A stretch of 64,000 nt of DNA from Perkinsus chesapeaki ATCC PRA-425 (GCA_013115145.1 JAAPAO010000011.1:79705-143704); one strand, 5' to 3'; shown: positions 58,930 through 60,559, counted from the stretch's first letter. Made by a program: numbers and translations. The notes: generated from the letters alone by a model not told the origin.

Positions 58930-60559
58930 TTTTGAAGTTCAAAATTTGAACCTAATCTCCGCGGATGCCTCTCTGCCTGCCAAATGACTCATTGGGAGAC
59001 AAAGAGGCAATGAGCTTCTACTCTTGTGTACAATGATTTGAAGAAGCAGAGTCTGCTCAGCAGGCTCAGTTCACACGGGATAATCCAGGCTGGATTATCC
59101 AGCCCATGGGAGCTTGGATGCAGACTGCATCATGCAGTGCAAGGCATACATCCTCTGTTCCGGGAGGCGACAGTTGTGTTCGCATTCTGTTCGAGATCGA
59201 CATGGAAAGCGCAATTGTTCACCTGGTGAATAATCGCACTCACCATATGTTGACGCCTTGGGATTCCCGATGCATCATCTCTTCCGAACTTCGGAATCCG
59301 AAGAGAGATGCACGATGTGATGACTCCGCCCCCAAGCTACTCGCAGAGCTTCTTCGATGTGTTCAAAAGGAGAGTGATGTAAGCAGGTGATAGGATGAGG
59401 ACTTCAGAGTCGAGACGGGGATAGTATTAAGGTGCGACTGGAAACATAAAATGGTCGGCGACCATTGGTCGCTTGATGCGATGGTAGTTGAGTATGTCAT
59501 GCGCCGTGTGCGCAGTGAGGAGTCAATCAATAACTAGCTCCTTATAATGACCTTATAATTGGCTGCGGGAGAATACGAAAATGGACGTTTGAGAGGATTG
59601 TTACTGTTAGAAAGCAGCGATTATAACTACTAAACAGTAGTCACTAGTGTTGTGCGGCACAACACTAGTGACTACTGTGCTAAGCACAGTGCTGATATGT
59701 ACGCAGTGCGCAGTGACTGCGTATACCAAGATATGAGAGAACAGCGTATAGGATACTCGAATAGGGAGGTTCACTCGAATAGGAAGTTGGTCAGACAGTC
59801 TGACAGATACGCTATTCGCTGTCACAGACACCATCAGAAAGTATATAAGATTTCAGTGCGAGACTTCGTAAAACGAGGGAGTGGATTAAGAAAGACGCAC
59901 TGGACAGGAACTCCCTGCCAGGGAGGATATTCAGGGAAAGGAATGCCCCCTTTCCCAGCGTCTCTGGTTTCCTCACGCAGATCGAGAGGAAATCGGGACT
60001 CGTGTTGGAGTGTAGTTGAGTAAATAATTTATTTATTTAAAACAAAAGTCCTGGGGAGGTGTTGTTCACGAGGGCTAGACATAGTTAACACAACAAAGGG
60101 GATAAAACCAGTGTTAACTCTTATAGTGTCTACTCATACATGCACTGCATGTCACAATCACTGCATGTCATGCAGTGATTGTCACGAAACGGTGGGCGAG
60201 CGATATACAGTATGAATCTTGGGGTGCGCGTAGCGCATTCGCACATGCATAAGCGATGCGAACAGGTGTCATCATCTAGGAGGGGACATTCTTGTGACTG
60301 ACTCTCGTAAGGTGTATTACCGCTGTTTCTCAGCGGGATAATATTCACAAGGGAGGATCCACAGTGGGAGCCGGAATGCAGTATAAAGCATACATACTGT
60401 GAAGAAAGGCGACAGTTGTATTCGCATAATGCGAATCGCATTCTGTCCCCGATTGACATCATGTCAATGAGATGAGGAGTCATCATTGAGGACTCCTCAT
60501 CGATTACTAACATTCCTGATTGTCTGATACAATGAGCAATACTGACAAATTGTCAGTAT
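58930..60559. repeat. Cluster of perfect inverted repeats with 1-nt spacers (arms 6-22 bp)
   Basis: I found 17 with arms of 7 bp or more by eye, including 59078-59100 (11 bp), 59634-59678 (22 bp), 60154-60182 (14 bp) and 60539-60559 (10 bp). Confidence 0.93.
60430..60540 (-). mobile_element. Possible PIF1/Helitron helicase remnant (Walker B segment)
   Basis: IAHCIRQSGMLVIDEESSMMTPHLID resembles AELIRQAKLIIWDEASM. The frame is broken immediately upstream and no Walker A is seen. Confidence 0.3.

Follow-up and report, generated by a model that had tools for sequence, protein, structure and literature searches.

One-base-spaced palindromes form a dense field of 22-bp units on 8-bp sites in Perkinsus chesapeaki, probably as hAT-type excision scars

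The genome of the shellfish parasite Perkinsus chesapeaki contains a dense field of perfect palindromes whose two arms are separated by exactly one base. We identified this field in the final 64 kb of JAAPAO010000011.1 (assembly GCA_013115145.1), the stretch of DNA analysed here and referred to below as the window. The field is probably a cluster of excision scars, or footprints, left by hAT-type cut-and-paste transposons in dispensable non-coding DNA. The mechanism is of a known kind; what is new is that the outcome is uniformly 22 bp, densely packed and naturally preserved in a perkinsid.

Perfect inverted repeats were counted across the whole window at their innermost spacer only, with 15 dinucleotide shuffles of the window as the baseline. 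For arms of at least 7 nt, 36 inverted repeats have a spacer of one base, compared with 4.1±1.8 in shuffled sequence (maximum 8), and for arms of at least 8 nt the corresponding counts are 15 and 1.1. At the same minimum arm of 7 nt, spacer 0 yields 4 repeats versus 4.3 in the shuffles, and each spacer from 2 to 12 falls within or near the shuffled range, bearing out the remark in the original prediction that other spacers looked much rarer. The excess of odd palindromes is specific to spacer 1 and is window-wide yet strongly clustered, with 21 of the 36 lying within 58930-60559.

The original prediction had reported at least 17 such palindromes in this interval. A re-scan of the sequence located every one of them at its given coordinates, with arms of 7 to 22 nt and a single central base in each, and added four that had been overlooked, at 59088-59104 (arm 8), 59289-59303 (arm 7), 59674-59690 (arm 8) and 60021-60035 (arm 7), for a total of 21. 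The last of these had been given as a 6-bp case at 60022; the two other 6-bp cases, at 59045 and 59709, are present as described. The field itself extends past 60559 to ~63.05 kb. Odd palindromes reach ~7 per kb in 58.9-62.4 kb (n=25), compared with 0.064 per kb in the shuffles. Because other ORF-free DNA of the window holds only ~0.28 per kb, the cluster exceeds what mere absence of constraint would produce.

The centres of odd palindromes with arms of at least 6 nt form nine pairs at a spacing of exactly 7 bp; below 14 bp, no pair has any other spacing. Such a pair of centres implies a 22-bp unit, x-D-y'-rc(D)-x'-D-y, in which an 8-bp word x-D-y is written forward, as its reverse complement, and forward again (+14 bp). 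Because their centres pair in this way, the palindromes are not independent, and overlapping pairs that had been entered as separate palindromes prove to be single events on an 8-bp site. The window contains eight perfect triple-arm units at a site length of 8 and none at lengths 6, 7 or 9-13; the four odd-centre triple-arm units at length 5 are a raw count. We also scored the 22-bp model by its 14 base-pair constraints per scored window. Across the 64 kb, 21 scored windows satisfy at least 12 of the 14 (0.2 expected), eight of them perfectly, and another 14 satisfy 11 (2.4 expected). Several palindromes earlier taken as single are decayed 22-bp units, namely those at 59044, 59904, 60453, 61548, 62335, 62356 and 63029. 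The scars and associated palindromes are listed below in window coordinates and without strand, with fractions giving the constraints satisfied.

58930-58951: 22-bp scar, 14/14, site TTTTGAAC (T TTTGAA G TTCAAA A TTTGAA C)
59044-59065: decayed 22-bp scar, 12/14 (A AGCAGA G TCTGCT C AGCAGG C), the same as the 6-bp case at 59045
59078-59104: 22-bp scar at 59082-59103, 14/14, site AATCCAGC, with flanks that lengthen the arms to 11 and 8
59117-59138: 22-bp scar, 14/14, site GATGCAGT, with a paralog carrying the plain site (see below)
59282-59303: 22-bp scar, 14/14, site TTCCGAAG, from the palindrome scan and the 22-bp model
59451-59472: 22-bp scar, 14/14, site ATGGTCGC, from the palindrome scan and the 22-bp model
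59634-59690: perfect palindrome of 45 bp centred on 59656 (arm 22), chained to another of 17 bp centred on 59682 (arm 8)
59790-59804: lone odd palindrome of 15 bp, arm 7, in which a third arm cannot be recognised
59904-59925: decayed 22-bp scar, 12/14 (A CAGGAA C TCCCTG C CAGGGA G)
60138-60182: 22-bp scar (A CATGCA C TGCATG T / CATGCA G) interrupted by 16 nt, apparently through nested events
60421-60442: 22-bp scar, 14/14, site TTCGCATT, with a paralog carrying the plain site
60453-60474: 22-bp scar, 13/14, site TTGACATG, with a paralogous site
60471-60501: 31-bp odd palindrome, arm 15, one mismatch; the arm contains an older 13-bp odd palindrome
60539-60559: 21-bp perfect odd palindrome, arm 10, from the palindrome scan
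61548-61569: 22-bp scar, 13/14, from the 22-bp model
62029-62077: 49-bp odd palindrome, arm 24 at 92%, with a perfect core at 62038-62068 (centre 62053)
62335-62377: two abutting 22-bp scars, 62335-62356 and 62356-62377, 13/14 each
63029-63050: 22-bp scar, 12/14, one substitution, in the middle arm
26399-26420: 22-bp scar outside the field, 14/14, site TTACTGTA, from the 22-bp model
27137-27158: 22-bp scar outside the field, 14/14, site CCTGGAAG, from the 22-bp model
30254-30275: decayed 22-bp scar outside the field, 12/14, from the 22-bp model
48708: scar outside the field

The arms derive from the local flank; in two long palindromes, one arm is part of a repeat family and the opposite arm a new inverted copy of it. 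In agreement with the earlier claim that the arms have no common motif, the 17 inferred 8-bp sites are unrelated in sequence and share no recognition sequence. Hermes makes 8-bp duplications at nTnnnnAn targets (PMC10368747), and in this small sample T is found at position 2 in 8 of 17 sites and A at position 7 in 6 of 17. Taken together, 14 of 34 positions agree, compared with a 25% background (p ~0.03), a weak lean in the direction expected for hAT.

Two old duplicates within the field, 78% identical over their BLAST core, preserve the ancestral state of three scars:

59100-59215: paralogous segment copy 1, in which the sites of the 60421 and 60453 scars are empty (no strand)
60352-60480: paralogous segment copy 2, which supplies the empty site for the scar at 59117 (no strand)

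The copy 2 scar at 60421-60442 (T TCGCAT A ATGCGA A TCGCAT T) corresponds to a plain TTCGCATT in copy 1 (59179-59186), and a MAFFT alignment places a gap of exactly 14 nt opposite it. The neighbouring copy 2 scar at 60453-60474 (T TGACAT C ATGTCA A TGAGAT G) corresponds to TCGACATG in copy 1 (59197-59204), and the C and A at its centres complement G and T. Reciprocally, the copy 1 scar at 59117-59138 (G ATGCAG A CTGCAT C ATGCAG T) has a plain AATGCAGT as its counterpart in copy 2 (60375-60382). When the three scars are collapsed to 8 bp, the global alignment score rises from 47 to 82, the internal gaps disappear, and the duplicates become collinear. Both central bases complement the outer bases of the ancestral site in all three scars with a known ancestor; the long palindrome centred on 60168 departs from this rule. 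These comparisons indicate that each of the units is a +14-bp rewrite of an 8-bp site, with the rewrites arising independently in each copy and later than the duplication. Both the triple-arm units and the +14 bp relative to the paralogs are as expected of an origin in an 8-bp target-site duplication. For the scars outside the field (26399, 27137, 30254 and 48708), no paralogs were found.

Alongside the 22-bp units, the field contains longer palindromes. Five are perfect (59078-100, 59634-78, 60154-82, 60539-59 and 62038-68), and imperfect ones lie at 60471-501, 62029-77, 61885-915 and 63215-65. Self-inverted BLAST matches in the field are of odd length in every case (45, 51, 49, 35, 31 and 31). 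Two of these palindromes meet repeat families in Logan contigs. An ~8x family aligns to the window only rightwards from 60168, the centre of the 29-bp palindrome (arm 14), and the right arm is therefore the original and the left arm a new copy. This inverted copy of the right flank makes up the 16 nt that split the scar at 60138-60182. The 60168 centre keeps the original base, not its complement, unlike the 22-bp units; the hairpin would therefore have been opened on the other side of its tip. A second family aligns only from 62054, one base past the centre of the 62038-68 palindrome. Left of this boundary the repeat copies carry ...CAATATACAGGA, and the window has a similar ...CAATATACGGG immediately beyond the left arm, at 62021-62031. 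At 60168 and at 62053 alike, the flanks on both sides are thus kept, and an inverted copy of the right flank was therefore inserted at a point.

The field is thus built from separate events piled on one another, in some cases one within another. The chained structure at 59634-59690 can be read, by analogy, as a long hairpin-derived tract. It and the palindromes at 59790-59804, 59709-59721 and 60539-59 stand alone, with no remnant of a second target copy; by the same analogy, these lone palindromes would fit the hAT-scar reading too. Tandem repeats do not account for any of this, since TRF recovers only the 14-bp period of a four-arm structure. Separately, 62287-62405 is possibly a 119-bp insertion that contains both abutting scars, on the basis of a 20-nt contig side only.

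The field begins 250 bp past the stop codon of a ZIP-transporter exon (57708-58682) and lies inside a segment that one haplotype carries:

58726-63840: haplotype-specific non-coding segment holding the field, recognised from a second contig path in sample S2 (no strand)

In this sample (2022), a second contig of 1270 nt and approximately equal depth matches 58526-58725 at 88% and rejoins the window at 63841. Its differences in 58526-58725 fall mostly at every third base, marking a diverged allele of the coding exon. Judging from the 1270-nt length, ~1 kb would stand in for these 5115 bp on the second haplotype. Because the second haplotype is without the 5.1-kb segment, the DNA of the field is haplotype-specific and dispensable. 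The segment includes repeat pieces of raised depth (60168-60243 and 62858-62940). A Pfam scan of 30 window ORFs, including all those of at least 72 aa in 58.7-64 kb, returned host genes only (a ZIP transporter, an MFS transporter, a PI3/4-kinase-type kinase and a FAD-binding enzyme), with no match among the ORFs of the segment.

The sequence establishes the geometry, its confinement to an 8-bp site and a 1-nt centre, the gain of 14 bp over the ancestral site and the complement rule at the centres. From this record, we infer the transposon itself, the manner in which its hairpins would be opened, and the reason for the clustering. Zhou et al. 2004 reportedly found, for Hermes, that the hAT flank hairpin arises with a first nick offset by 1 nt, leaving one unpaired base at the tip. 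More generally, hAT transposases close the flanking DNA into hairpins on element release (PMC5499845, PMC4763223). Ac/Ds footprints are palindromes of flank origin centred on the complement of the base adjoining the element; in yeast their arms extend up to 20 nt, with arms of at least 3 nt in 47% (PMC5873905). This footprint structure, combined with an 8-bp target duplication, therefore predicts the 22-bp unit. The original prediction had proposed a process that writes odd-symmetry palindromes into DNA free of constraint, with a hAT-flank hairpin bearing one unpaired tip base as its first candidate. The 22-bp unit and its 8-bp site favour that candidate, and further support comes from the paralogs with a plain 8-bp site, from centres that complement the outer bases, and from the likeness to Ac/Ds footprints (PMC5873905).

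In the sequence of steps that we propose, insertion of the element would duplicate an 8-bp target x-D-y. At excision, the transposase would nick one strand 1 nt into each flank, and each flank would be sealed as a covalent hairpin whose tip is one unpaired base. The host would then open each hairpin 8 nt or more away from its tip, yielding 3' tails: the left tail would read ...x D y' rc(D) x', and the right tail would carry its complement, x D y. The tails could anneal over the 8 nt that stem from the target duplication, and flap trimming and gap filling would follow. The product would always be L-x D y' rc(D) x' D y-R, 22 bp compared with 8 bp at an unoccupied site. This anneal and fill-in step would reproduce every constraint of the 22-bp unit. 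The lone long palindromes (arms 10-24) may have formed where one hairpin was opened far from the tip and the other end was resected, and the nested or abutting structures may reflect re-insertion into or beside an old scar. Whether a centre retains the original base (60168) or its complement (22-bp units) would be set by the side of the tip that is nicked.

The scars occur at a density of approximately one per 140-250 bp, far above usual footprint reports, and the hAT reading therefore needs an extra assumption: the clustering could stem either from elements that hopped repeatedly over short distances or from a hotspot that favours landing. Among the Pfam-scanned ORFs of the window there is no hAT transposase, and a search of the window for an element with terminal inverted repeats (TIRs) and an 8-bp duplication gave one spurious candidate only. 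An occupied allele of any scar site was found neither in the window nor in the reads and contigs that match the field. Two Logan contigs from a related species (22.6 kb in total, proteins 66-70% identical), mostly genic and too diverged for intergenic alignment, contain no 22-bp scars and one odd palindrome. A search for orthologous DNA with a WD40 protein returned only the window's own contig, and a literature search found no paper joining Perkinsus with such palindromes or with hAT elements.

Among the closest known systems are the Ac/Ds footprints in plants, S. cerevisiae and Candida albicans, which share with the field their flank-derived palindromes, complement-centred symmetry, 8-bp duplication and microhomology (PMC5873905). 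Those footprints, however, are heterogeneous (28 types among 128 Candida events), have arms mostly of 1-3 nt, and come from one experimental donor site. In the Perkinsus field, by contrast, a single 22-bp outcome dominates, using the full 8-nt overlap of the unfolded hairpins, and the record is natural, dense and of multiple ages, with no resident element.

A host hairpin-forming nuclease acting with no true hAT transposition, either a domesticated hAT- or RAG-like enzyme of the Kat1 kind or one from another superfamily with an 8-bp stagger, is a very unlikely source of these structures. The domesticated hAT transposase Kat1 does make hairpin-capped breaks (PMC4763223), and both the extreme local clustering and the lack of an element in the window would suit such an enzyme. 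The two site copies in the product, however, require a prior target duplication, which is to say an insertion, and no recognition sequence is common to the sites. Other hairpin-forming families also predict a different symmetry. The MULE Muta1 resembles the field in forming a hairpin on flanking DNA and in its 8-9 bp duplications (PMC5499845), but that hairpin is even (43+43 nt) and >90% of its excisions are precise; it predicts spacer-0 palindromes, not odd ones. The P nucleotides of V(D)J recombination, made from RAG hairpins opened by Artemis, are likewise palindromic additions from a flank hairpin opened off its tip. RAG and Transib hairpins, though, have no unpaired tip base and give even symmetry, P tracts are 1-4 nt long, and the geometry is that of a heptamer and 5 bp, not 8 bp. 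A MULE-type scar would call for a duplication of 9-11 bp and a Transib-type scar for one of 5 bp. In the window, spacer 0 is not enriched (4 versus 4.3), and triple-arm units at 9-11 bp number zero.

A replication or repair process independent of transposons is very unlikely; in it, template switching, or snap-back synthesis at breaks, would copy forward, back and forward again. The four-point model of Loytynoja and Goldman reportedly describes short template-switch mutations that generate local inverted repeats in non-coding DNA or make existing ones perfect, with no sequence specificity. Such switching was the second candidate of the original prediction. It does yield the same forward, reverse-complement, forward product, the chained and nested structures look iterative, and no transposon was found in the window. 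It nevertheless gives no reason for an 8-bp unit each time (eight perfect at 8; none at 6, 7 or 9-13) or for one central base only, with spacers 0, 2 and 3 showing no excess. Template-switch mutations have variable lengths and spacers, with no fixed 8-bp unit, single central base or complement rule; here, the unit length is 8 only and the spacer 1 only. Furthermore, snap-back priming requires a loop of several bases, and the observed centres obey the complement rule of a covalent hairpin with a 1-nt offset.

It is highly improbable that the palindromes are selected structural elements, such as cruciform or hairpin sites for replication, recombination or protein binding. Dense perfect palindromes in a single intergenic region downstream of a gene might suggest such a role, but the arms are unrelated, a 1-nt loop cannot form a hairpin, and the entire segment is missing from the other haplotype. 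The decayed copies at 12-13/14 show no maintenance, and no Rfam family was detected in the field or the segment. Chance and sequencing or assembly artefacts, for which only a general caution about palindromes in assemblies speaks, can practically be dismissed. Odd palindromes outnumber those in dinucleotide shuffles 9-fold, matches to the 22-bp model exceed expectation 100-fold, and a sequencing read is much longer than any unit. In addition, Logan contigs of two samples from two independent studies (2020 and 2022) differ from the window by 0 letters over 58401/58526-63011, which excludes an artefact confined to one data set or assembly.

If the field is a cluster of hAT-type excision scars, its value lies in how legible it is. 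A cut-and-paste transposon usually leaves no visible trace of its excision in a genome, since most footprints are small and differ from one another. In this field the footprint is long and uniform and can be recognised by sequence alone, and past excisions could be counted and mapped and their original 8-bp targets read. The footprint would also report on how the parasite repairs hairpin-capped double-strand breaks, by long unfolding followed by microhomology joining, a repair route relevant to editing the Perkinsus genome and to integrating transgenes into it. Finally, such dense clustering within haplotype-specific DNA points to re-insertion at very short range or to a hotspot for landing, and each of these would help explain how 'accessory' DNA is built in these highly heterozygous genomes.

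A bolder reading, which we consider doubtful, is that the scars are more than a passive by-product of ordinary transposition and point to a dedicated repair pathway or a domesticated nuclease. In one version, perkinsids may always unfold the hairpin and join the ends through the 8-nt overlap, lacking the Artemis/NHEJ route that opens hairpins at the tip. Every hAT excision would then leave a self-identifying 22-bp mark, and old scars would come to attract further landings and so expand into fields. Another version has a domesticated hAT-like nuclease that may break accessory DNA repeatedly.

The preservation of the units, from 14/14 to 12/14, indicates that they accumulated over time, and with such decay excisions could be dated. 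The mismatches in the decayed scars, although very few, number six in the outer arms and one in the middle arm, compared with an expected ratio of 2:1.

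Around the field of odd palindromes (perfect inverted repeats with exactly one central base), at 58436-58725 and 58726-63840 of the window, Logan contigs reveal a second haplotype in S2, the 2022 sequencing sample, at a depth approximately equal to that of the first. Within the last ZIP-transporter exon (58436-58725), this second haplotype differs from the window by ~12%, mainly at third codon positions. The 5.1-kb non-coding segment that follows (58726-63840), which holds the field, is replaced in it by ~1 kb, a length we infer from a 1270-nt contig. Sample S1, from a 2020 study, contains only the long form.

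Within this segment, five perfect scars (22-bp units read as hAT-type excision footprints, with all 14 of 14 pair constraints satisfied) are found inside 540 bp (58930-59472), at successive steps of 152, 35, 165 and 169 bp. Decayed scars lie mostly to the right of this group, and the perfect scars may record recent hopping that came in a burst and over very short distances.

Further along, a TIR-like pair (62054-62089 and 62635-62670, 86% complementary) marks the ends of a 617-bp MITE-like unit (62054-62670), at which no 8-bp target duplication is visible. The left end of this unit adjoins the centre of the palindrome at 62038-62068. A paralogous contig appears to join 62286 to 62406, a weakly supported junction, one side of which is matched over just 20 nt; the 119 bp missing from that contig (62287-62405) include both abutting scars (62335-62356 and 62356-62377).

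The window ends where contig JAAPAO010000011.1 ends, within a repeat (63929-64000) ~85-fold deeper than unique DNA, which is probably why the assembly breaks there.

In a large protein collection, many homologues of the ZIP-transporter exon (57708-58682), named bacterial proteins among them, carry a cyclic-nucleotide-binding domain alongside the ZIP domain (PF00027+PF02535). The sole close eukaryote-like match is a Logan protein with 70% identity.

Elsewhere in the window, the apparent odd palindromes at 11648-11664 and 17119-17135 are GCTGC/CAG-type simple repeats lying within ORFs and form no part of this phenomenon. Separately, GC skew is positive throughout ~10 kb (4001-14000, +0.16 to +0.28), a region with few long ORFs.
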